64,000 nt of DNA. It comes from Piromyces finnis finn (taxonomy: Eukaryota > Fungi > Neocallimastigomycota). Each line of letters begins with the position of its first letter. The stretch's first letter is position 1. The translations under genes were made by a program, and so were the position numbers. Below the pieces are notes generated by a model, which ran no database searches, was not told the origin of the DNA, and saw only the letters and a program-made list of their open reading frames with translations. This document shows, piece after piece, positions 11,101 through 30,688 of this stretch. The stretch is from contig MCFH01000090.1 of assembly GCA_002104945.1 (NCBI GenBank), positions 61,837-125,836 of the forward strand, given 5' to 3'.

Positions 11101-13016
11101 CTTCGTCAGCAACTCAAATCAAATAGTAATACCAGTATGAATGATAGTTTAACTGCTCATTTAACAAAAGATAAGACTTCTAATGATTCAATATCTCTTT
11201 CTTCTTCCTTCAATAGTAACAAAAGTGCTAGTCTAGTTAACATGAAACCAGAGAGTGATAAAGATAAAATGTCACCCACCTCATCAAATACCTTTTCTAA
11301 CGCAAAACTATTCTCACTTGAAAAACATAATAGCTTTAGTAATATAAAATCGCATACTTCTAATCTCACAGGTCTCGTGTCTTCGTTGAAGCGTTCTCAA
11401 TCCCTTGTCGATAAATCAAAAACAAAACAACAACAAAAGTTATCCATGTCCCCAAACCTTTCCAATGCCTCCTTTCTTACACACGATTCCACTATTAATA
11501 ATAATAGTAATATTGCCACCAAGGGTTCTATTAAGAATATAAGAAGACCTTCTACAGCCTCTTTTCGATCTACTTCCGACATTGATATAGATATGGATGT
11601 AGGCAGTCCTTCTCTTTCATCAGTGGCTTCACCCTATACCTCACATTCGAGATTAGGACCAAAAAATCTTTACACTTCCTCTTCTTCTCAAGCTATTTCA
11701 TTAAGTGAAGATCTTGCTATTACTAATAAGATCAATTCTCTTTCCGCTTCCCTTTCCTCTTCCTCTCTTAAACAATCTCAACTTCAATCCTTCTTCAAAT
11801 CTAAAATTGGTGATGATTCTGAACCTATTTTAGGACAACCTACTCCACATTCTAATGCTTCTGAATTTATAAAACCTCCACCCCAACAACCCAAAATAAC
11901 ATCCATGCCACCTCGTTCATCACCATCACCATCACCATCACCCTCACCGTTTATGACTTCACCCTTCTCTAGTACCTTTAATATGCCAATGGCAATGGAT
12001 GGACTAAATTTTGATAATCCAATGTATCATCCATTAGTTCATTCTTATACAGAGGATCAACTTTCTCAAAATAGTAGTGATGGTGGCTATAATTCAACCA
12101 TAAAAATGGATAATGATAAATTGCCTACGACTACCACAAATTATAATAATATTTTTGCTACTGGTTTAGGTTATGGTTCGACCTCCAATAATAATAAAGG
12201 GGTTTTACCATATATCGAAGGGGATAGTATTATTTCAGATACAAGTACCATTACATCGACAATGGTGAAAAAACGATCCTCTCATCATGTTCAGCCTTTC
12301 CATCCTTCTCCACCCGTCATAACTTCCTCCCTTCAACTTCCACTTCCAAAAATGAATAGTATCAATGATTTTCTTCAACAACAAGAATTTAGAAATCAAG
12401 CCCTTCTTACTCAAAATGAAGAAACCATAAATGATAATCCTTATACCTCTGTTCCAACTACCAATTTTTCTGGAACTAATGTAAATAATACCTTTTCCCA
12501 AGGAAATGTAAAAGGTTTAGAAGGAGATTATATTAGTGTAGAAGATGTTCAAGCTCTTGCCACCCATTCAATTCCACATAAAATGTTACTTCAAGCTTTA
12601 GAAAAGTCTGTAGAAAGTATTCGTGATGATTTCCAAGAAGACATTACCAATATCCATTTAGAAATTATTCGTCAATTTCATATTCAAAAGGTATTTTTTT
12701 GATTCATTAATATCGAAAAAGTTTTTTTGACCTTTTTTTTTTTTCTTTTCTTTAATTAATCAATATAAAATAGAATTTTTATTATAAAATAACTAACTAT
12801 TTTTTTTTTCTTCTTCTTTTATGAATAATTTACTATTCATTTTTCGTATATATATTTATATCTACCCTTTTTTAATTTTTTTTTTTTTTTTTTCGATAGA
12901 TTGAATTTGAAACCATGTTTCATCAATATTCAGTTATTGACAACATTCAAAAAGAAATTAATTATTTACGCGAAGAAAATAAACGATTAAAAAATTTTCA
13001 ACCTCATACCAACTAA
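8121..13016 (+). CDS. NEDD1: NEDD1/GCP-WD gamma-tubulin ring complex targeting factor, ~1064 aa
   Basis: Exons 8121-8283, 8572-8654, 8907-9026, 9209-9349, 9505-9826, 9968-10059, 10161-10245, 10358-10377, 10482-10533, 10691-12690, 12900-13016 (3195 nt, in frame). N-terminal WD40 repeats (LATAGDDG, HYAPIQSIQF, SVGLDKRI, GEILFYDIR) lead into a long S-rich disordered middle. The C-terminal helix IRDDFQEDITNIHLEIIRQFHIQKIEFETMFHQYS...EINYLREENKRLK matches the NEDD1 gamma-tubulin-binding tail. Confidence 0.88.
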
Positions 13017-14226: not shown

Positions 14227-15417
14227 TTCTCAAATGTTTTTTTAATTATTAATTTATAAAATATTAAATTTTAATTTTTTTTATTATAATAATAAATAAA
14301 AATTTATTTCTTTTGTTTGAACAACAATTACTATCCCTTTTTAGGAAAAAAAAGATATAAAAAAAGGTTTTTTAAAGTGGGAATATTTCATATTTTATAA
14401 TAATTTATTATTATTATATTATCATTTTATTTGGTATTTTATTAGCAATTTTTTATTTTATTATTTCTCATATTTTAAAATTAGTAAAATTTGGAGGATG
14501 GCAAAGTTAAAATTAATAAATTAGCATAATCAGCAATGAACGAGTGGTGAAAATATTTTAATTTAAATTTTAAATTTTAATATTTAAAAAAAAAACATTG
14601 AAATAAAAGTGGTATTAACAAAGAAAATAAAACAAACTATCATTCTTTAAGTAGGTTACCACTAGTAAAATACTTAATATAATTAATTATAAAGGATCAA
14701 TATTAATACCAAAAAAAAAAAAAAAAAAAGCGGTCTTTTAAACAGCTTTTCAAGATTTTGATAAATCAAGAATTTTCTTTTATCCTAATTTATGATTGGT
14801 TGATTATATATCAGAGTATACTTATAATATATTAAATTTAATTTTTCTATTTTTTTTTTTTTTTAGGTTAAAAATTTTTTTTATTCTATTTCCTTTCAGC
14901 TAAATGAAGTAAAGAGAGCTTTAAAAAATAAAATTTTGATTAGTAAAAATATATTTTAATGAAATATAGGAAGGTGTAAAGAAAAAGAAAAAAAGGGAAT
15001 ATAATTATATATAACAAAAATTTAATAAATATATAAATATTTAACAAAATTAAAAAAAAAAAGTCTTTTTGATTTCAATAATTTTAATTATTGTATATAC
15101 CAAAATTTAAAATTTAACTTCAACTGTATACCATTGTAATTATGTTATTTTTAATTTCAATGAAACAATAATTTATTTAATAATTCATAATTAAAACTTA
15201 TTTATTCCATTAAAGAAAATTCATAAAAATTCAAAAATTCAGAAATTTAAAATTTAAAATCGAAGAAAGAATTTTTTTATTTCTATATATAAAAAAAAAT
15301 TCAAAAATTATTTATATATCATAAAATAGATTAAAAATAATTTAACAGTATTCAAATTTAGATACATATAATAATCAATATTCTTCAAAATTATTTAAAG
15401 AAAAAGAATTAAAAAAA

Positions 15418-16983
15418 ATGTTATCCGCTTTACATGTTATAGGTATATTATTTACCATTATTGTTATTGCCTTAGTTGGTTATTTCTCTGGTAAAAAGGT
15501 TAAAAATGCCAAAGATTTTGCTACCGGAGGAGGACAAGCTGGTATGTTTATCATCACTGGTATTATTTTAGGTACATTAATTAGTGGTCAAGCTACAATT
15601 GGTACTACTCAATTAAGTTTTGCTAATGGTATTTGTTCAATGTGGTTTGTTATTGGTTGTAGCTTGGGTTGTTTAATTCTTGCTATTCCATATGCTATTC
15701 CACTTCGTCGTAGTAAAAGTACAACACTTATGGAAATCATTTCAAAGGAATTTGGTCGTAAAACTGAATACTTATGTTCCGTACTTTGTTCCATTGGTAT
15801 TTTCATTAGTGTTATTGCCCAAGTTATCTCTGCTAATGCCCTTTTAACTACCATCTTCCCAATTAGTAATATTGTATCCTCAATCATTGCTATTATATTA
15901 ATGGCAGTTTATGTTATCTTTGGTGGTGTATGGGGTGCAGGTTATGGTGGTATTGCCAAATTATCCTTAATTTATATCACTTGTATCATTGGTGGTATTA
16001 TTGTATGGGTTAAGAATAATGGTTATGGTAATCTCATTCCAGAAATTATTAATAAAATGAATGGAACTCCTCTCGGTGCTTCAAACAATCTCCTTAATTA
16101 TGATGATGCCTCTTTCCACTATAAAAATGTTGTTGCTAGAGGTGCATTAAAGGATATTGGTAATGGTCTTTCCGTTGCTCTTGGTATCATTTGTACTCAA
16201 ACCTATGCTCAAGGTGTCTTTTCAAGTAAGAGTAATCGTGTAGCTATAAGTGGACCAATCCTTTCAGCTATTTTAATGCCACCTGTCTGTATTCTTTGTA
16301 TGATCATTGGTTTCTATATGCGCGCCAATTTCATTACCTCTGAAGAAGCAGATTTTATTACCAAAATGGGTAAAGCCGTTCCAAATAACATGGAAGTTAT
16401 AGAAAGATCTTCTCAAGCTTTTCCAATGTTTGCTTATCATAAAATGCCAGATTTCATTGGTGGTGTTACTTTAGGTACTCTTCTTGTTACTGTTGTTGGT
16501 GGTGGTGCTGGTTTATCCCTTGGTGTATCTACTATTATACATAGAGATATTATTTCTAAAGTATTCAAAATTGAAGATGCAAAGAAATCTCTTATTATTA
16601 TTCGTGTCATTATTTTAGTTATTTTAATTACTGCTGCTGTAATTGCTGATTTAATGCCAGGTACACTTATTAATGATTATGGTTTCTTATCCATGGGTTT
16701 ACGTGGTACTACTGTACTTTTACCACTTTCTGCTTCCCTCTTTTTCAAAAACAAAATTAATAGTATTTTCTGTTCTGCCTCAGTTATTCTTGGACCTCTT
16801 TCTGTTTTAATAAGTAAATTTGTATTCAAGGTTTCCTTTGATCCATTATTTGTTGGTCTTGGTGTTTGTTTAATATTATTTATTATTGGTTACTTTGTAG
16901 GTCCAAAGAAGGTAAAGGAAGAAGTAGAAAGAACAGAAGATGAAATTATTGTTGGAAAGTTAAAAGAATCTGGATTTTTATAA
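15418..16983 (+). CDS. Sodium:solute symporter family (SSF/SLC5-like) transporter, 521 aa, intronless, bacterial-like
   Basis: Single ORF with about 13 hydrophobic helices and SSF hallmarks (KDFATGG, GTLISGQATIG, WFVIG, TLMEIISKEFG, VIFGGVWGAGY, STIIHRDI, GLRG). No introns, unlike most neighbouring host genes. Substrate unknown. Confidence 0.9.
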   Translation: MLSALHVIGILFTIIVIALVGYFSGKKVKNAKDFATGGGQAGMFIITGIILGTLISGQATIGTTQLSFANGICSMWFVIGCSLGCLILAIPYAIPLRRSKSTTLMEIISKEFGRKTEYLCSVLCSIGIFISVIAQVISANALLTTIFPISNIVSSIIAIILMAVYVIFGGVWGAGYGGIAKLSLIYITCIIGGIIVWVKNNGYGNLIPEIINKMNGTPLGASNNLLNYDDASFHYKNVVARGALKDIGNGLSVALGIICTQTYAQGVFSSKSNRVAISGPILSAILMPPVCILCMIIGFYMRANFITSEEADFITKMGKAVPNNMEVIERSSQAFPMFAYHKMPDFIGGVTLGTLLVTVVGGGAGLSLGVSTIIHRDIISKVFKIEDAKKSLIIIRVIILVILITAAVIADLMPGTLINDYGFLSMGLRGTTVLLPLSASLFFKNKINSIFCSASVILGPLSVLISKFVFKVSFDPLFVGLGVCLILFIIGYFVGPKKVKEEVERTEDEIIVGKLKESGFL

Positions 16984-17526
16984 GCTAATCGGGTTTTTTT
17001 TTTTTTAAATCATTTTTATTATTACTTTTTATTTATTTATTGCTATCACTATGAAATAAATAAATAAAAATATAAGAAAAAAAGAATGTTTTTTTTTTTT
17101 TTTTATAAAAATAGCATTTTTATATTTATTAATTTAATAATATAAAAAAAAAATTAATTTATTTTTTCTTTTCTTTTTACACCAATTTATTTTTATTTTT
17201 ACATTTATACCATAAAAAAAAAATTACTAATAGAAATTAAAGAAATTATATTTATTTATTCCAAATATTTTAGTCTACTGTATAGAAATAAAAAAAAATA
17301 ATAATAATAATTAAAAAAGTAAACATTCTTAAAAATAATTAATAAAACTATTTTTTATATTTATTTTTTCTACTTTTTAAAAATTATTTAATAAAACAAT
17401 AAAAATTAATAACAATAATAATTTAATAATAAAACCTAATTTGGTTTTTTTTTTTTTTTTTTTTTTTTATTTTATTTTATTTTATTGTTGATTTACTTTT
17501 TAAAATTTTATTTTATCTTTATATAG

Positions 17527-17557
<31 letters not shown>

Positions 17558-17678
17558 TTTTTTTGCTACTGCTTTTATTATTATTTTTATTATCATTACT
17601 TTATCTTTGTAGAATGTAATTATTTACTTTTTTTTTTTTTTTTATTTTTTTTAGAGTATTAACAAATATGGTTTTAAA

Positions 17679-17720
<42 letters not shown>

Positions 17721-18040
17721 CTAAAAAAATAAAACTATATCTACCTATTGTATTATTACATTTAACTTTTTTTAATCTAAACAAATAAAAAATGATTTGT
17801 AATGATAAATGTAGGTGTGTTTGTGTGTGTGTTGTATGTGTTAGGTAATGGAAATAAAGATAGCTATAATATTTTTATAATGGTATTTATAGTAAAATTT
17901 TAAAAAAAAAAAAAAATTATATAAAATTATATATGTATTAAAAAAAAAAAAAGGAAAAAAAAAATAATAAAAATGATTTAAAAAAAAAATGATTAGCTTA
18001 TAAAAATCCAGAATCCTTTAACTTTCTAGCAATAGCTTCA
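16941..18040. repeat. Imperfect inverted repeat: arms 16941-17023 and 17963-18040, joining the 3' ends of the symporter and the RasGEF
   Basis: 16941-16990 versus the reverse complement of 17991-18040 gives 44/50 identities, including 22 exact nt (tctggatttttataagctaatc) across both stop codons. After a T-run there is a further exact 18-mer, taaatcatttttattatt (17006-17023 vs rc 17963-17980). Confidence 0.93.
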
Positions 18041-21031
18041 TCATCACTTTCTCTTGGTTCTGCAATAAGAGACATACTATACAAGGTAGCTTCATCAACG
18101 GTTTCATTAAGGAATTTTAATATAAAGTCACTTATTCCTTTTACATAATTTAATTTATAGGGTTGGTTTTGATATTGTTGAATTTCTCTAATAACTTCAG
18201 CAGTTTTGGTTTGCTTACTAAAGTTAATAAGCTGATTATTTGATTTTAAATTATTGGTATTACCATCTTCAATAAAAGTTAAATCAGTAAGGTAAACACC
18301 AAGGAATGGTACACATGGTGGATTAACAGAATGAAGATTTTCACGATAATGAGCATAGTTCTTTTGTGGATTCATAACACTTTCAATATTATCAAACATC
18401 ATTTTCACCTTATTAGATAAATGATCCCAAGTACGTTTTAATCTATGAATTGGTGAAGAGTTAAAACCAGCAAGAATTGACATGACGGTATTGAAATTAT
18501 TTAAGGAATAGCATCTATCAGCAATTAAAATAAAGTGCTTTAAGATATTACAACGACGCTTTATATCACTTTCACCTAAAATAGAGGTTGCTACCCAACC
18601 AGTAGTTCTATTGGAAAATTCAATCATAGCTTTAACATTAACAGCTGGTGAATTTTCTTTTTCTGACCAAGCTTTATTTAAGCATTCAATTGGTTGAATT
18701 TGAGTGTAAGTCCTTGATTCCAAAATAGTTAATTGTCTTGCTATTTCTAATGGATCAATATCAAGGAATTTGAAATTATTCATGTTTTTGGGTAAAATTG
18801 GTGGTGGAGCATCTTTACTGCTAACACTTATGGATATCTTCTTGACAATACCTGCATCCTGTGAAAATTATGTAAAATACATAAAATCAATAATCCATAA
18901 ATAAATTTTAATGCAATCACTTTATTTCTTAAAAACAATTACATATATATATTATGCTTATCATCGCCTATTCAAATACTTACTCTCTTTTCTAATGTCT
19001 TTAAAATAGTGTTGGCAATATTAGCATGTTCACCAACAGTTTGGGAGGAGAAGAATTGACGAACGGCATCCATTGCCTTTGCATCATCAGCATTACCTTG
19101 TAAATCAAGGGAATAAGTTTCAATCCATGACTTTAAGACATTACAAACACGAAGACGAATTGGCATAGCCTTCTTTTCATTCCATATCTTAAGGTCTTGT
19201 GGATTATTTAATTGTGGTGGTGGTTTAATACAGAAACGCTTAATTAAGGCATCAATAACTTCCATGGAAGATGCAAATGAACGATATGTTAATAAGAAGG
19301 ATTGAGTAAAGTTAGTATCATGGGAATCGTGAATAGTTAAACGTTCAATTAAAGCTGGGAAAGTGGCACCCTTGACCTTTCCTTCCATATTAAATACAAT
19401 ATCCTTATTACTATAATCATAGTTTAAGTACCATGGTTTAGAATTTAAGTCAGGGGCAGAAGCTGATGTTTCAGTTAAAATTTCATCACCAAGTAATTGC
19501 TTTAACTTATTTTTACTAGTTTTTCTTTCATTTATAAATCTTGGATCATTTGGTGGACCGTTAATGTTAAACTCAGCAAATTGTTGTTCAAGAGTACGAC
19601 CTGGAGACATCATATTGCTTGGCATTCTTTGAGAGTAAGCACGTTCTCTACCTTCTTCTTGAGCACTGATACATTTGTCACCACTTTCTGGGATGTCACT
19701 CATATTAGAATTAATGGCAGAAAGAGATTGGGAACGACGTCCACGATTCTTCATTTGTGGATCCATATAATATTGTTCTGATACAACAGATGGACGTCTG
19801 TTATATTCATTAAACATCATTTGGTAGTGTTCTTGTTCACCAACTTCCTTTTCTTGTAAAAGATATTTTACAGAAATCATAAAGTCCTTAACACCCTTTT
19901 CAACTAATCCAGCACCAAGAATAACTTGTTCATTAGCATTATTTGGACGAATTGGGCTAACTGAATTTTGTGCTGCAGTGACTAAACCAGAAATATTGTT
20001 ACATAAAGCAATACGATTAACCTTAAATTCACGAGTTGCTTCAGTATTCATATTATCATATTGAACTTCATCAACAACAGAAAGTAAACGACCAACATCA
20101 GTAACAATTGATCTTGTTTGAGTAATTAAGAAACTAGTTTGATAATCTGGTTGGCGTAAATTTGATATTAATTTTTGAGTACTTCTGAAAATTTCTTGAG
20201 AACATTGTTCTAATTGTGCAAGTAATTCAGAACTAGCTTGAGCTGGTTCTTCTTGAGCATCGCGAACTTCTTCTGGACGAATATCAATCAATGATTTATC
20301 TAATTTTATATCAACATCTTGAGCAGCCATTATAAATTGACGAACAGCGCCTAATACATCATTAGCTGTTTGTTGCATTTTAATAGCAGCATCTGGTGGT
20401 GGCCAGACTTGAGATGCTGTCTTTGTTGCCAAAACTAATAAATTTAATGTACGCATAATGTTTTTATTTAATTGTTTAAGAACATTGTAATTTGGATAGT
20501 GTTGAATATCATGATTAACTGTTCCAGAAGCATAAAGCATTAATCTAATAATTTCAACAATAGTTGTTGATTGTTGAACATATAAACCTTTTTGCTTTAA
20601 TTGAGCAGATTGGTTAAGTTGTTGAACACTGTGAGTAATTTCTTGTAACAGAATATTCCATGTTAATTCAGATTCAAGAATTCTTGAGGTTATAGAACGA
20701 TAATCAGAATCTCCACTATTTGAAATTGGTCTTTCTTGTTGTGGATCAACAGATCTTGAAGACATCTTTTATTTATAACAGTTAAACGTATATTTCATTA
20801 TGAAATTTTTAAAAGTCGTCAGTGCAACAAAATAAAACAATTTTTAAATATTATAATAGTGTATTATTATTCATATAGTATTCGTATTGTTATAATTATT
20901 TGATATTTTTTTTCATTATGATTAGGTAATGTTATTCAATTATTTATATGATTCATCATTGATTCATAAATCATGGTTTATTTAAACATGTATTATATAT
21001 AAAATATTATTAAAAATAAAATATCATCATT

Positions 21032-21072
<41 letters not shown>

Positions 21073-21963
21073 ATTCATTCCAAAAAAAAAAAAAAAATCA
21101 TATAAATTGTATTGATAAATGATATTTACAAGTTCACCGGTTTCTGGATTGATTTCATCAATATCCCAGCAAGTTTCATCTGTAATCTTATTGAAATAGT
21201 AGACTTGACCATCATAAGTGGTTTTCTTTCCCCATTGTGGTGGTAACTAAATTTTATAGGAATAAATAAAAATCTTAATATTAAAGAAATTTTTTCTTTA
21301 TATATTTTCATAACTATAAAAAATTGACGAATTCCTACTCTTATTCCACTATCACCAGATCTTCTTGATGACTCTGATAATCTATGTCTTCTTCCTTGTT
21401 GAATATCAAATTCTTCATATCTTTATAAAATAATTATATATTAATAAAGAAGTATTGCAATGGTGATATTTATAAATCATTAATAAAAGAATATTACAAT
21501 ATTTAGACTATAATTATATTAATTACTTACTCTTCTTGATTATTCATTTCATAACCCATTTCTTGTGGTGGAATCATATTTCCTTGTCTTTGTTGCTTCT
21601 AATTTCAAAATATATTTATAAAATTTTTATATGAATTAATTTTATGAGCTATTCACCAAAATTTTAATTTATATTCAAACTTACAGATATATCAATATCT
21701 TGAACATAATTTGATGGAAACCTTTGTATTCGTAATTATCGTATTATATGCAATATTTATAACTTTAAATTTTATTCTTTAAATATTTTGAAAAAAAAAT
21801 AAAAATAAATTGAAATTTACCATCCACGGTTACCGTTACAAATACCGTCCCACCAACCAGAACTTAATCTACTAATAACTTGAATAATATCACCTTGTTT
21901 TAAGGATAATTGAGAATCATCTTGAGCCTCAAAATCAAATTTTGCTTCGACATGTGAAGACAT
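17998..21963 (-). CDS. CDC25: Cdc25-type Ras guanine-nucleotide exchange factor (SH3-WW-REM-RasGEF), ~1029 aa
   Basis: Minus-strand exons 21963-21821, 21721-21685, 21598-21531, 21420-21339, 21246-21130, 20765-18984, 18858-17998 (3090 nt, in frame). Domains: SH3 (AKFDFEAQDDSQLSLKQGDII..SGWWDG..RGWFPSNYV), WW (LPPQWGKKTTYDGQVYYFNKITDETCW), REM (VKGATFPALIERL, FLLTYRSF, RLRVCNVLKSW) and CDC25 GEF (DPLEIARQLT, NNFNTVMSIL, PCVPFLGVYLTDLTFIEDGN, INFSK). Confidence 0.95.
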
Positions 21964-25000: not shown

Positions 25001-25741
25001 ACAAAAATGTACATAAAAAATTTCATTGTAGCCATCTTTATTCAGTAGACAAAATAGGTAGGAAAACTCATAAATTATATTGATCCTATATACATGAAAA
25101 TTACCAAAGAGCTGACACAACACAGTTAAACTACATTGGATTTTTTTTTTTTCTTTTTTTTTATTTATTTATTTATTCTATTACCTAAAATTTTAAATAG
25201 TTTAAATATATAATAATATATATTATAATTTTTTTTATTTTTAATTATTCTATAGTATTATTATAAATTAACGAATAAATTTTTTTTTTTTATTTTTTAT
25301 TTATTTTCCAAAATGTTTTGATAGTTATAATTTATAGGTTGATTTTAAAGCCTTTTTTTTTCTTTTTGATTTGTTTTAAATGTTGTTAAATTTTTTCTTT
25401 TTTTTAAAAAATTAAAAAAAAGGCTTTAAAATCTTTATATTTTTTCATGTTGAAAAAAGTAAAAATAGTAATTTAATAGTATTAGTATTTTTTATTCATA
25501 TAAAAAAAATATATATTTCTTTTATAATAAATTATATTAATAATGGGAAAATATTTTTAAAAGTTTTTTTTTTTTATATATTATTATTATTTTATTAGTT
25601 TGTATGTATATTGATGCTTATAATTAAAAATTCTATAAAATATAAATGGGTGATGTATTTTTTTAATTTATACTTTTCGTTAATAATGAAAAATAAAATT
25701 AAAAAAAAAATAGTTTAAATTATTGAGTATAATATCAATTT

Positions 25742-28700
25742 TTAATAATTTTTATCCTTTGGCATATCCATGACTATACCTTGTTCCATTTCTTGTTGAT
25801 TTTTTAAAAGTTGCTTTTGTAATTGTAAAATTTGTTGTTGTTGTTGCTTAATCAATTCTTCTTGTTGAAACATTCTTTGTTGTTGTACGGATTCATAATC
25901 CATCATATCTTCCATTGGATTCATCATTGGATTATATTGATTTGGATTATAACCGCCAAGGTAAGGAGAACTAATCATATTAATTGATTTTTGTTTTGGT
26001 GAAAGAAGTGGAGATGCCATACCAGTTGATGGCATACCAATTGTTTCTGCACCTAAAAGTGGAGAACGTCTATAGGTTGGTCCACCAATTGACTTTGGAG
26101 TTGCTATAATTGATGGAGAGTGTGAAGTGGATGGTAATGACATTGGTGGTAATGTTGGACTAGTGAGACTAAAATCATTTAATGGTTTTGTGACTGGAGA
26201 ATATGGAGAATATTGTCCTTTTAATAATGGTGTAGAAGAAACCATGGGTATCATTGATTGTGAATTCATTCTTGGGGTTCGGCTACCATTCATGGCGCTT
26301 AAATTTGGTGATTTAATCATATTCATATTTGAATAGTGTGGCTTAAAAGATTCTTTACGAACTGGATGCTTTGTTATACGAATATTCTTAACTTGTGGCT
26401 TTTTAACAACATTTGCTTGACCATTAATTGGAACCATTAATGGAGATGTTACTGGTTTTTCTCCATAAGTATGACTTCTTTCAATACCAGATGGGGCCAT
26501 GCTTGAATTATAACCAGTAACATCATCGTAAAGAGATCCTAAATCGCCACTCATGCCCTTATTGTACAAAGAATGTGGACGTCCATTACTAAAATTGGTA
26601 TTATTATATAATGGCGAATTGACAGGATTTGGATTAATAATACTAACATTTCCTATGTCTAAGTCTTCTTCCATACTATTTGGCTTTGGTGGTAACTTGG
26701 CGTTACTAAATTTATCTCTAGCAACGAGACTCTTAATGGAAGTGACCCATGATTGGCATTTTTGTTTATTATCACAACCAATGATTATATATCTCTTAGA
26801 ATCAGAATCTTCTGGCTTGGATATAATTTCGACAAAATATGGAACGATGTTTATTGGATCAAAATATTCTTTTACAATTGTATTTGAATTAATTGGAACT
26901 GCAATAATAGCATGATTCTTTGGATCATTAGAAACAAAGCAATAAATCCAGCTATCTTGAGTTAAAACAGTAAAACGTCTCTTCCAGCCTTTAAGAATAC
27001 CATGAGTACTGTAATAAAGATTATCTGTTAAAATAGGTTTAAGAGAAGCTAAGGTTGGAGTCAAATTACGATTAACTTCTTTAACTTCTTCAAATTCCTT
27101 CATCTTTTCTCTCTTACTAGATTTTGCATTCTTCTTACCATCTATATAATCAGGTTTCTTTAAAGGAGTAGTTGGTGTTGGTGGTGGTGGTGATGAAGAG
27201 GTAGTATCTTCCAAACCAATGATTTTTAATGCTTTAGAACTAATAATACCGTTAACTTGATTTTCACCATCATTTATGGAATAGCGAGAAAGATTTAAAT
27301 TATCAACTGGAAGACTGAATTGTTGATGTGGAGATGAAATTCCTACATTTGGAGTTCGTGGAGACATTGGATTCATTTCATTATTCAAGCTATTCATACT
27401 ATTCATACTGCTCATAGTGTTTCTGTTATTCATACCATTCATATTGTTCATATTGTTCATATTATTCATCATGGAAAATTCATATTCAGAAAGTCCAAAT
27501 ACCTTTTTCACTTTTTGACTCATAGCAAATGAATTATTACCAACACTGTTAAAAGAGTTATTTGATTTAATTGATCCCATGGTCAACATGCTTGGATCTC
27601 TTGTTAAGTCATCATTATCATCATTAAGAAGATTTTCTACTTCTTCTATTTCTTCTAATGACATTGGTCTTTCATTCATATTTCTACCCATTTCATGGGA
27701 TGGATATACTGGCATATAATCTTCAGTTTGAGGTTTAGATGAACTACTACCATTACGACCATGACCTTTATTCATTATATGTGGGCTTGTTATTGGAGCA
27801 GCGTTAAGCATTGCTAATTCTCTTTCATCAAATTGGAAATTAGCAAATTCATCTCTTTCATCTGGAGCATTCATTCCAAGCATCTTAAGAGCTTTAGCAC
27901 TCATGTTTGAAATAGAATGGTTTTCAACACCAACTAACTTTAAAGCCTTTGTACTAATTACTGGACTTGGAGCTGGATTCTTCTTACTTATCATAGAAGA
28001 TGGATTAACAGAACTCTTTAAAATTTTTAAATTGTTATTTAATGATTGATCAATATCGAAATCATCATCCATATTATACATAGGAATGATGTTATTGTTA
28101 CCAACTAATGGAGGATGTAAAGCACTTTGAATGGTAATATCATGAACAGATTCTGGTGACATTGGACCACCTTCAATAACAGCTGGTAATGGTAAAATAT
28201 CTGGATCATCACTCATGACACTTTCAGTATAATAAGATTGTCTTGTGTAGGATGAAACTGGTCTTTGATTTAAATTATTCATATCCGGATTTGGATTTTC
28301 AATAAATAATGAATTAGTTAAAAGTTGATTTCTTTTATTATTTGACTTATTCCTCATACGTCTAGTTTCATCATCACCTTCATAGCCATCAATTGTTGGA
28401 TCCACGGACTTTAATTTTGGAGTTTTAAAACTTTGTATCTGATTATCTAAGTCTTCTAATAAATTTTCAATATTTGAAAAAGTGTCTTTTAATTTTTTAC
28501 TAGAAGTTTTAAAAGCTTCTGCTTTATTATTAATTTCATCTTTTAATGAATTCGTTTTCTTAGTTTCTTTGTTTTCATCTTCTTCCTTTTCTTCAACAGG
28601 TTTGTTTATTGAATTTGACTCTTCTTTTTCTTCAACACTTTGAACTTCAGCTTTAAGTGATTGATCATTACCAGAATCTTCCTTAGTCGATACATCATCT

Positions 28701-30688
28701 TCGGAATCAAAATTATAAACAATAGCTTGTAATGGTTGATTATTATTTGATTTCCTCTTAATTTTAATTGAATCAGATTCATTTACACTTTGTATAGTGA
28801 CTGTTTGAACATTAGAATTAAGTGGAGTTGAATTATCAGTAGTGAGAGATGTACTGGATTGTCTTTTTTGTTGATCTTCTTCTTCATCTATATTAATAAC
28901 TTCAGTTAAACGACCTAATGATAAGTGTTGTAAATGACCCTTGGATTTTTCATTTTCTTTTGATAATATACTTTGATTATCATCTTCCTTAGTTCCACCA
29001 AGAGAAAATTGAGGAGGTACAGGAACTTGAGGAGTTGGAGGTAATGGGGTAGCTGGTGGTGGTTGTGGTGGAGCAATCTTAAGATGAAGATTAGCTCCAC
29101 TTTGACCTTTATTAGAAACAGACTTTGTTTCTAAGGATTCTTGAGGAGAAGAATGATTTAATAATTCTATTTCATTATTATTTTTTAAACTCTTATTAAT
29201 CATTTTCTCTATAGCATCAGAATTTGAAATTAAAAATTGTTTTTCAGCATTATTTATATCATTAATTGATTTTAATGCATTAGAAAATTCATTTAATTCC
29301 TCTTCTGCAGCATAACTGTCATCAATAGAGGTATCTTTAGCTTCTATTTCAGACATATTATTTTCATTTTCTACATTTTCAATATTTTGGTTACTTTCGT
29401 TATCAATTTCACTAATATTTGATTCATTTATAATTAAAGATGATTCATGTTCGGAAATTGAATCACTACCAGTAACAATGACTTGAGATAATTGAGAAAT
29501 GATTGAACCCTTTTTCATTATTTCACTTACATAATCATTTTCTTCTTCTTCTTGAGTTTCCTTTACTTTATCGTCAACATCGATAATTTCTTTTTCTTCA
29601 ACTAATCTTTCATCTTTATTTATTTCTTCAGATTGTTCTTGTTTTTCTTCACCATCTTCAATTTTTTCTTCTATATTTTCTATATTCTCAATAGTCTCAT
29701 CTTTTTCCTCTATATTTTCACCAACGTCAACCTTTTCTTCTACGGTTTCTTCTTTTTCTTCAACAATATCTTCAGAATTTTCTTCTTCGATAACTTTAAC
29801 TTCTTCAACCTTTTCTTCAGAATTTTCTTCTTCAATAACTTTAACTTCTTCAACCTTTTCTTCTAAACTTTCTTCTTCAACAACTTTAACTTCTTCAACC
29901 TTTTCTTCAGAATTTTCTTCTTCAATAACTTTAACTTCTTCAACCTTTTCTTCTAAACTTTCTTCTTCAACAACTTTAACTTCTTCAACCTTTTCTTCAG
30001 AATTTTCTTCTTCAATAACTTTAACTTCTTCAACCTTTTCTTCTAAACTTTCTTCTTCAATATTTTCAACATTTTCTTCAAAAGTTCCTTCTTCAGCAAC
30101 TTCAACTACATCCATTTTATCATTACTTAATTCTTCATTGACATTTTCATTAATTTCTTCAATTAAAATGTCTTTTTCTGATTCAGGCAAAACTTCTTCA
30201 GATACATTAATCTTATTTGATTGGTTATCTATTTTTTCATCTTCACCTTCTGCTATTTCTTTTTCAATCTCAACAATATCTTCTTTTTCTACTTCAGTTA
30301 TTTTTTCTTCCTGTATTAAAGTAGGTTCTTGCAACTCTTTATATTGTTCTATTGGAATATTGTTGATTTCAATTGAGATATTATCATTTCTTTCTTTTTT
30401 ACCACCATAGATTATATGTTTTTCAAGTTTTTTAATCATATTTTTTACCTTATTCTTTTTTTTACCCTTTTCACTTTTTGTACTCTTGGTACTTTTTACA
30501 GAAGTTTCACTAGTAAAACTAGCTGTTTTATTCAATAATTTTATTCTATCAGATACTGATATAGAATTAGAAGAAGTCGCTTTATTTAATGTCATATTTA
30601 CATCTTGACTATTTACAGAGATATTATTAGAAGAAATGTTATTGACATTATTTGTTTCGTTCATTTTTGATTCTATATTATCACCCAT
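25742..30688 (-). CDS. Large intrinsically disordered protein with a C-terminal-half PH domain, 1648 aa
   Basis: Single uninterrupted ORF with an acidic repeat N-terminus and Pro-rich motifs (PPQPPPATPLPPTP). PH-like segment YYSTHGILKGWKRRFTVLTQDSWIYCFVSNDP...YIIIGCDNKQKCQSWVTSIKSL. C-terminal Q-rich coiled coil. No ortholog recognised. Confidence 0.8.
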   Translation of the reverse strand: MGDNIESKMNETNNVNNISSNNISVNSQDVNMTLNKATSSNSISVSDRIKLLNKTASFTSETSVKSTKSTKSEKGKKKNKVKNMIKKLEKHIIYGGKKERNDNISIEINNIPIEQYKELQEPTLIQEEKITEVEKEDIVEIEKEIAEGEDEKIDNQSNKINVSEEVLPESEKDILIEEINENVNEELSNDKMDVVEVAEEGTFEENVENIEEESLEEKVEEVKVIEEENSEEKVEEVKVVEEESLEEKVEEVKVIEEENSEEKVEEVKVVEEESLEEKVEEVKVIEEENSEEKVEEVKVIEEENSEDIVEEKEETVEEKVDVGENIEEKDETIENIENIEEKIEDGEEKQEQSEEINKDERLVEEKEIIDVDDKVKETQEEEENDYVSEIMKKGSIISQLSQVIVTGSDSISEHESSLIINESNISEIDNESNQNIENVENENNMSEIEAKDTSIDDSYAAEEELNEFSNALKSINDINNAEKQFLISNSDAIEKMINKSLKNNNEIELLNHSSPQESLETKSVSNKGQSGANLHLKIAPPQPPPATPLPPTPQVPVPPQFSLGGTKEDDNQSILSKENEKSKGHLQHLSLGRLTEVINIDEEEDQQKRQSSTSLTTDNSTPLNSNVQTVTIQSVNESDSIKIKRKSNNNQPLQAIVYNFDSEDDVSTKEDSGNDQSLKAEVQSVEEKEESNSINKPVEEKEEDENKETKKTNSLKDEINNKAEAFKTSSKKLKDTFSNIENLLEDLDNQIQSFKTPKLKSVDPTIDGYEGDDETRRMRNKSNNKRNQLLTNSLFIENPNPDMNNLNQRPVSSYTRQSYYTESVMSDDPDILPLPAVIEGGPMSPESVHDITIQSALHPPLVGNNNIIPMYNMDDDFDIDQSLNNNLKILKSSVNPSSMISKKNPAPSPVISTKALKLVGVENHSISNMSAKALKMLGMNAPDERDEFANFQFDERELAMLNAAPITSPHIMNKGHGRNGSSSSKPQTEDYMPVYPSHEMGRNMNERPMSLEEIEEVENLLNDDNDDLTRDPSMLTMGSIKSNNSFNSVGNNSFAMSQKVKKVFGLSEYEFSMMNNMNNMNNMNGMNNRNTMSSMNSMNSLNNEMNPMSPRTPNVGISSPHQQFSLPVDNLNLSRYSINDGENQVNGIISSKALKIIGLEDTTSSSPPPPTPTTPLKKPDYIDGKKNAKSSKREKMKEFEEVKEVNRNLTPTLASLKPILTDNLYYSTHGILKGWKRRFTVLTQDSWIYCFVSNDPKNHAIIAVPINSNTIVKEYFDPINIVPYFVEIISKPEDSDSKRYIIIGCDNKQKCQSWVTSIKSLVARDKFSNAKLPPKPNSMEEDLDIGNVSIINPNPVNSPLYNNTNFSNGRPHSLYNKGMSGDLGSLYDDVTGYNSSMAPSGIERSHTYGEKPVTSPLMVPINGQANVVKKPQVKNIRITKHPVRKESFKPHYSNMNMIKSPNLSAMNGSRTPRMNSQSMIPMVSSTPLLKGQYSPYSPVTKPLNDFSLTSPTLPPMSLPSTSHSPSIIATPKSIGGPTYRRSPLLGAETIGMPSTGMASPLLSPKQKSINMISSPYLGGYNPNQYNPMMNPMEDMMDYESVQQQRMFQQEELIKQQQQQILQLQKQLLKNQQEMEQGIVMDMPKDKNY
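29771..30058 (-). repeat. Coding 45-bp tandem repeat x6.4 (EEESLEEKVEEVKVI / EEENSEEKVEEVKVV)
   Basis: Six 15-aa units plus a partial seventh are visible in the translation. Two unit types alternate. Confidence 0.95.

Follow-up and report, generated by a model that had tools for sequence, protein, structure and literature searches.

Chimeric genes that arise by partial duplication of a neighboring gene are known from Drosophila and other eukaryotes, and duplications produced by staggered breaks are known at the breakpoints of Drosophila inversions. At breaks in yeast, microhomology is documented to give rise to inverted insertions with a local template (Yu et al. 2024, PMC11724301), microhomology-mediated template switching has been described as microhomology-mediated break-induced replication (MMBIR; PMC2621351), and bacterial genes have been domesticated in Neocallimastigomycota (Murphy et al. 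2019, bioRxiv 10.1101/487215). Here we examine a 64,000-nt stretch of Piromyces finnis finn DNA (contig MCFH01000090.1; hereafter the window, to which all window coordinates refer), in which an SSF/SSS sodium:solute symporter gene and a Cdc25-type RasGEF gene lie as convergent neighbors and carry related sequence at their 3′ ends in inverted orientation. We consider it probable that the symporter is a lineage-specific chimeric gene, onto which about 110 bp of the GEF 3′ end were copied in inverted form by a templated repair patch.

The locus has in common with chimeric genes of the partial-duplication kind a duplicated gene fragment, an in-frame fusion that creates a new C-terminus and a donor that stays intact, and we found homology at the DNA level, a segment ancestral in the donor family and its absence from the recipient's orthologs. 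It differs from them in that the fragment is only ~110 bp long, inverted and taken from a convergent neighbor, and in that it comprises only the last 17–20 codons, the stop codon and the proximal 3′ untranslated region (UTR), so that a tail is replaced and no domain is added. With templated or foldback insertions (PMC11724301) and MMBIR (PMC2621351) the locus shares a junction that holds nearby sequence copied in inverted form, purine-rich microhomology at the left edge and the apparent deletion of the original sequence; unlike the yeast insertions (PMC11724301), the patch is about 110 bp long, fixed and present in RNA data, and its mechanism is one that we infer. The symporter itself resembles the class described by Murphy et al. 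(2019) in being intronless, in having Clostridia as its nearest non-fungal relatives and in its host-like G+C content, whereas the exchange of its tail is a later event in a single lineage, outside domestication. The gene is unmentioned in the text of that preprint and in one supplement (bioRxiv 10.1101/487215).

Two convergent genes share an inverted 3′ end

The symporter terminates in ...KKVKEEVERTEDEIIVGKLKESGFL and the RasGEF in ...EPRESDDEAIARKLKDSGFL; the two C-termini are collinear, with 11 of 20 residues identical and a TAA stop in both. The similarity continues past the stop codons, as evidenced by a gapped local alignment with three small indels, in which 16922–17041 (+) and 18055–17947 (−) agree at 96 of the 109 aligned bases, the two arms being separated by about 905 nt. 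The parts of the locus are as follows, where L007 denotes the GEF locus of Piromyces sp. E2 and L008 a further locus with a related GEF.

15418–16983 (+): SSF/SSS sodium:solute symporter gene, 521 aa, intronless, with a chimeric 3′ end (open reading frame; PF00474)
15418–16920 (+): native part of the symporter, with all transmembrane (TM) segments up to ...GYFVGPKKVKE (collinear with fungal orthologs)
16922–17041 (+): left (recipient) arm, with the GEF-derived last 17–20 codons, the TAA stop (16981–16983) and about 58 nt of 3′ UTR (local alignment and four-way alignment with GEF orthologs)
17042–17946 (no strand): spacer between the arms, AT-rich (9–18% G+C) and intergenic, with long T/A runs (sequence and composition)
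17947–18055 (−): right (donor) arm, with the RasGEF's own last codons, stop (18000–17998) and proximal 3′ UTR (alignments; tail motif ancestral across fungi)
~18819–17998 (−): last exon of the Cdc25-type RasGEF, with the catalytic RasGEF domain and the fungal C-terminal extension (PF00617; tblastx with L007 extends to 18819)
20765–18978 (−): preceding RasGEF exon, with DUF7783 and RasGEF_N (Pfam; collinear with L007 and L008)
21963–21124 (−): RasGEF exons further upstream, with the SH3 region (tblastx matches to those L007 exons that bear SH3)

Exact matches between the arms are confined to these two places. The 22-mer TCTGGATTTTTATAAGCTAATC, which spans the stop codon, occurs exactly twice in the 64 kb, at 16969–16990 (+) and 18012–17991 (−), and two matches were obtained in none of 100 shuffles. 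In the 3′ UTRs the 17-mer AAATCATTTTTATTATT is restricted within the window to 17007–17023 (+) and 17979–17963 (−), and becomes an exact match of 27 nt once the preceding T run is included, the longest exact run common to the arms. The local alignment of the arms scores 119, compared with a maximum of 53 among 1410 control windows from the same 64 kb and of 51 among 1000 shuffles, and the whole window holds only one other pair of G+C-containing inverted exact 16-mers within 5 kb of each other. The arms are thus homologous at the DNA level, and chance or convergence is rejected because the non-coding identity is both collinear and statistically extreme. We also rejected a miniature inverted-repeat transposable element or other element with terminal inverted repeats, since the rest of the window has no further copy of the arms and one of the two is the orthologous coding end of the GEF. 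A reading made earlier from the sequence only had claimed common descent of the two ends, non-coding sequence included, and the identity across codons, stop and 3′ UTR bears this out; its figures (11/20 residues, 22 exact nucleotides, an exact 18-mer, a distance of ~0.94 kb) proved essentially right when re-measured by alignment and exact-match counts.

The secure core of the left arm starts at 16936, its left edge between 16918 and 16936 is blurred by purine-rich low complexity, and tblastx/tblastn homology of the symporter to L001, a metagenomic gut-fungal symporter locus, ceases at window positions 16905–16919.

The chimeric junction is present in RNA data

In principle the left arm could stem from a mis-join during assembly or from a long read that is chimeric and palindromic, and support for the junction was therefore sought as k-mer shares in Logan contigs, with 13 sampled 31-mers across 16860–17040. 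These 31-mers are arm-specific, since the longest exact run common to the arms is 27 nt. They were present at a share of 1.00 in one DNA run and in one RNA run of a different study, and at 0.69–0.77 in three further RNA runs from two other studies. Four of the runs in which they occur are thus typed RNA and belong to three studies, the run types being automated guesses; the lower shares would fit transcripts or contigs that end near the T run at ~17000. Over 15400–19000 the RNA runs contain 0.72–0.78 of words, a proportion close to that of genic sequence. The RNA data do contain the chimeric junction. In favor of an artefact it can be said that the best DNA run is possibly the assembly's own source. 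The arms of a palindromic artefact would be identical, however, and these differ at 13 of 109 positions and by three indels. An assembly artefact is unlikely given the divergence of the arms and the recurrence of the junction 31-mers in RNA runs of three studies, and we give it next to no weight.

The RasGEF as donor

The last exon of the RasGEF (open reading frame 18783–17998, −) matches PF00617 with an E-value of 3.8e-68 and is 83% identical to PIROE2DRAFT_54633 from Piromyces sp. E2. The gene combines RasGEF_N (REM, PF00618), the catalytic RasGEF domain (PF00617) and an upstream SH3 domain, the composition of a Cdc25-type exchange factor; the SH3 exons were recognized via L007 and L008, with tblastx identities to L007 of 96% at 21963–21814 and 93% at 21258–21124. 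Among the 120 best homologs of the last exon, every one with a complete C-terminus, numbering in the dozens, closes with ...EPREREDEKIARLLxESGFL, and these homologs span Neocallimastigomycota, Chytridiomycota, Mucoromycota, Zoopagomycota, Ascomycota and Basidiomycota. The three closest orthologs, including that of Piromyces sp. E2, read EPREREDEVIARKLQESGFL, and the 3′ UTR of the Piromyces E2 GEF begins with GCTAATCA, as do both arms in the window. Both the tail and the initial bases of the UTR belong to the GEF lineage, because the tail is found in fungal Cdc25 proteins and the start of the UTR is common with E2. The comparison shows that copying ran from the GEF to the symporter; the reverse direction, from symporter to GEF, was rejected on the ground that the tail is ancestral in GEFs. 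In both respects, the ancestry of an ESGFL tail that recurs across fungal phyla and the direction indicated by this tail together with the GCTAATCA start common with Piromyces E2, the sequence-only reading held up.

An AlphaFold2 model of the last exon has a predicted local distance difference test (pLDDT) value of 92 and matches the folds of RalGPS1a, RasGRF1, SOS1 and a fungal Cdc25 with Z scores of 27–31. The solved Cdc25 domains align up to residues 243–254 of the 261 and no further, and the GEF tail is a predicted helix (residues 247–257, pLDDT 84–88) that lies beyond the matched core. The copied piece begins with the EPRE at the close of the canonical domain and so corresponds to the fungal-specific C-terminal extension. 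No usable documented role for the Cdc25 C-terminal tail turned up in the literature.

Measured against its three closest gut-fungal orthologs, the GEF tail of the window (17998–18060, −) has four amino acids replaced, namely R by S, E by D, V by A and E by D. It also has a Q to K change that is common to the symporter copy, in a motif that is otherwise nearly invariant across fungi.

A symporter that carried another tail

The recipient matches PF00474 with an E-value of 4.5e-24 and 85.5 bits against a cutoff of 22.8; in NCBIfam it has superfamily-level matches only, with all equivalogs far below cutoff, and no substrate was assigned. In the top 120 hits the first eight are gut-fungal, namely the window protein and seven others, with the remainder coming from bacteria or metagenomes at 47–52% identity and no eukaryote other than gut fungi among them. 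The seven gut-fungal orthologs are 73–85% identical to the symporter, one being listed in UniRef as 'Na:solute symporter, Piromyces sp.', and the named bacterial relatives are Clostridia/Bacillota. An intronless transporter whose nearest non-fungal relatives are bacterial had been proposed from the sequence, and the Clostridia/Bacillota homologs at ~50% identity agree with this. The G+C content of the gene (32–35%) equals that of host genes.

In the alignment, bacterial homologs stop a few residues beyond the last TM segment and have no tail, in line with the earlier expectation for SSF transporters. The gut-fungal orthologs (P0002–P0008, and L012–L014 from transcript-sized metagenome contigs) carry a conserved tail of 50–70 aa, ...E[VI]DITSQ...NTNVEIDIH, and the window protein diverges from them directly past ...GPKKVKE, with the GEF-like tail in place of the native one. 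A GEF-type SGFL tail is absent from P0002–P0008, from L012–L014 and from the bacterial homologs in this alignment, so that only the locus in the window carries the copied tail, the outcome for which the sequence-only reading had proposed an alignment of homologs. The chimeric junction pattern likewise had no match in the metagenome contigs. Several native-tailed orthologs lie on transcript-sized contigs, one of them with runs of A in its 3′ UTR, and L012–L014 have unrelated 3′ UTRs.

In a maximum-likelihood tree the fungal symporters form a clade with 100/100 support, within which the window protein lies three nodes deep, as ((window,(P0002,P0003,P0004)),P0005) with P0006, P0007 and L014 outside, and all the others are native-tailed. 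By parsimony, this nesting among native-tailed orthologs implies that gut fungi had the native tail ancestrally and that the window lineage alone has lost it. The tree is midpoint-rooted with a stem of 1.36 leading to the fungal clade, and nesting of that clade within bacterial diversity is not readable from it. The native tail itself, DITSQ...NVEIDIH, is a gut-fungus-specific, eukaryote-stage addition; it is without counterpart in the bacterial homologs and has been lost in the window lineage.

Timing of the tail exchange

A four-way alignment of the two window arms with the GEFs of Piromyces E2 and L008 was used to place the event in time. Relative to these two GEFs, both arms share derived states, a synonymous AAA to AAG change (the K of RK/GK) and a CAA (Q) to AAA/AAG (K) change. 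Because the arms share states derived in this lineage, the copy was taken from the lineage's own GEF after its split from the available relatives. At two codons the ancestral GAA survives in the symporter arm while GAT stands in the window GEF (REDE to SDDE and ESGFL to DSGFL), and both copies have changed since copying. The symporter copy thus preserves two GEF codons that have since changed in the GEF itself, and these help to date the event. The arms diverge at 13 of 109 positions (~12%), or ~0.13 after correction, compared with divergences between the window and its relatives at four-fold sites of 0.35–0.36 for the GEF and 0.55–0.68 for the symporter. Given an arm divergence of ~0.13 against 0.35–0.68, the event is much younger than the splits from these relatives, yet not recent.

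The sequence-only reading had drawn a further conclusion, that a bacterial gene landed at the GEF 3′ end, where an inverted duplication gave it its first tail and terminator and hence its expression. The gene is indeed intronless with bacterial closest non-fungal homologs, and the copied piece does include a stop codon and 3′ UTR, as such a footprint of foreign-gene integration would. At least four other gut-fungal lineages, however, have the symporter with the conserved eukaryote-stage tail, with 3′ UTRs of their own and in other genomic contexts. The window copy is nested within those orthologs, and the 100/100 fungal clade speaks against an independent second acquisition. In addition, derived states particular to this lineage occur in both arms, whose divergence is far below that of the orthologs, and the symporter has the G+C content of host genes (32–35%). 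The proposal that the gene became expressible through its integration at this site is thus contradicted by the comparative data, and we regard it as highly improbable. Since the window protein is nested in a native-tailed clade, the symporter was already an expressed fungal gene before the exchange. The exchange of the tail post-dates the transfer of the gene from bacteria to fungi, and is a later event in a single lineage. It does not mark the point where a gene of bacterial origin could first be expressed in a eukaryote, which had happened earlier and with another tail; the gene that it altered is itself one that gut fungi probably acquired from bacteria.

A templated inverted copy as the probable mechanism

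We propose that the exchange took place in an ancestor that had already split from the nearest sequenced relatives, and that it was triggered by a break or stalled fork in the region coding for the symporter tail. A 3′ end would then have invaded the nearby inverted template via purine-rich microhomology (GAA/AGA repeats), where native ...AAG GAA... would have met GEF ...GAA CCA AGA GAA AGA GAA.... Copying would have run from ~18055 leftwards to ~17947 before rejoining, with deletion of the native tail. Copied in this inverted orientation, the ~110 bp of RasGEF 3′ end comprise the C-terminal extension that runs from ...EPRE to SGFL, the GEF stop codon and 45–58 nt from the start of the 3′ UTR. 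The copy came to lie on the 3′ end of the convergent SSF symporter, about 1 kb from its source, where it joined in frame directly past the last TM segment (after ...GPKKVKE) and replaced the symporter's own 50–70 aa cytoplasmic tail, its stop and its proximal 3′ UTR. A templated repair patch fits this geometry, in which the copy is inverted and ~110 bp long, its source is ~1 kb away, the join is in frame and the native tail is gone. We infer a templated inverted insertion or template switch as the most likely mechanism, and the left junction does lie within GAA/AGA-rich sequence. The locus would then be a natural example, with known direction, of a tiny locally templated inverted copy that supplied a new C-terminus, stop codon and proximal 3′ UTR in one step and whose product survived.

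Several points weigh against this account. The microhomology at the left junction is no more than suggestive, its edge being blurred, and the foldback insertions described in yeast are mostly 5–34 bp long, come from experimental systems and are shorter than this patch (PMC11724301). The RNA and DNA support consists of k-mer shares in runs of guessed type that all derive from the same organism. Within the core of the symporter arm, every one of the three substitutions is non-synonymous, and a pair of these turns the conserved A-R of the motif into V-G, which fits relaxed constraint. Finally, neither the symporter locus L001 nor the Piromyces E2 GEF locus L007 shows flank synteny with the window, only the gene itself being shared in each case.

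Synteny across Neocallimastigomycota had been proposed as a check by the sequence-only reading, and it answered in part, giving a native tail and other contexts elsewhere but no conserved flanks with L001 or L007. No symporter lies within 10 kb of the Piromyces E2 GEF. Gene order around the symporter is not conserved between genera. At L001, the metagenomic gut-fungal locus of P0004, what comes after the symporter, in the same orientation, is a methyltransferase gene of the ICMT/PEMT family (11506–12177) and not a RasGEF, as was also seen at L002–L006.

Another route to the same arrangement is a micro-inversion through staggered breaks, in which the two genes were convergent neighbors already and the ~1 kb between a break in the symporter tail and staggered nicks around the GEF 3′ end was inverted, duplicating ~110 bp. 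Such an event predicts inverted copies exactly at both ends of one segment, and here they bracket a segment of ~905 nt, a feature common to inverted duplications at inversion breakpoints. Under this model the native tail should also have left a relic, inverted and next to the right arm (~17750–17946, −), and tblastn with seven native tails returned none that is credible. Between the arms this search and a six-frame reading, on both strands, gave low-complexity noise, a weak negative as decay could hide a relic; ~12% divergence in indel-prone, AT-rich DNA (9–18% G+C) could have erased it. Unlike the breakpoint duplications, the locus has yielded no displaced tail. We consider a micro-inversion unlikely and retain the templated repair patch as the favored explanation.

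Consequences for the symporter

The core of the symporter retains 83–87% amino acid identity against 39–45% differences at four-fold sites, which points to strong purifying selection. Because the core is strongly constrained and its words occur in RNA runs, the chimeric gene is very probably functional. The new tail probably serves as a short replacement cytoplasmic end, and the copied 3′ UTR may supply signals for 3′-end processing.

Whether the tail or the 3′ UTR was kept for a function of its own is a question compatible with the templated repair patch. An adaptive co-option could have retained them for sorting or endoplasmic reticulum export, for binding of a partner shared with Cdc25, or for post-transcriptional co-regulation. 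Few parts of fungal Cdc25 are as conserved as the tail motif, the reading frame and the KL.ESGFL terminus persist in the symporter copy despite ~12% divergence, the core is under strong purifying selection and the junction is found in RNA data, all of which speaks for such a co-option. The replacement of the conserved A-R by V-G in the symporter copy argues in the other direction. So does the predicted tail helix, whose pLDDT of 84–88 is typical of a segment packed on its own domain and not of a free motif. Moreover, a 60-nt frame that survives such divergence is unremarkable by chance and is no evidence of selection. Adaptive co-option therefore seems rather improbable to us. More specific still, and in our view very unlikely, is the proposal that ...KL.ESGFL-COOH acts as an autonomous sorting, membrane or binding motif that places the symporter with the Ras activator, in the manner of a transceptor, or that the shared 3′ UTR co-regulates both genes. 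The locus also draws attention to two protein elements, the widely conserved C-terminal extension of fungal Cdc25 and the DITSQ...NVEIDIH tail of gut-fungal symporters.

Other features of the window

Rfam and tRNA scans of the spacer between the arms gave no Rfam family and no tRNA. A GT-rich island (tgtaggtgtgtttgtgtgtgtgttgtatgtgttagg) at 17795–17850 stands out amid a spacer of otherwise 9–14% G+C, and it has no Rfam match. The spacer also contains T homopolymer runs of ~27 nt (17440–17470) and ~40 nt (17670–17720), which are likely to break short-read or transcript assemblies and may be fragile sites. The lone other G+C-containing pair of inverted exact 16-mers within 5 kb, 25341–25356 and 25418–25433, is short and hairpin-like and lies just downstream of an open reading frame of 1648 aa (25742–30688, −).

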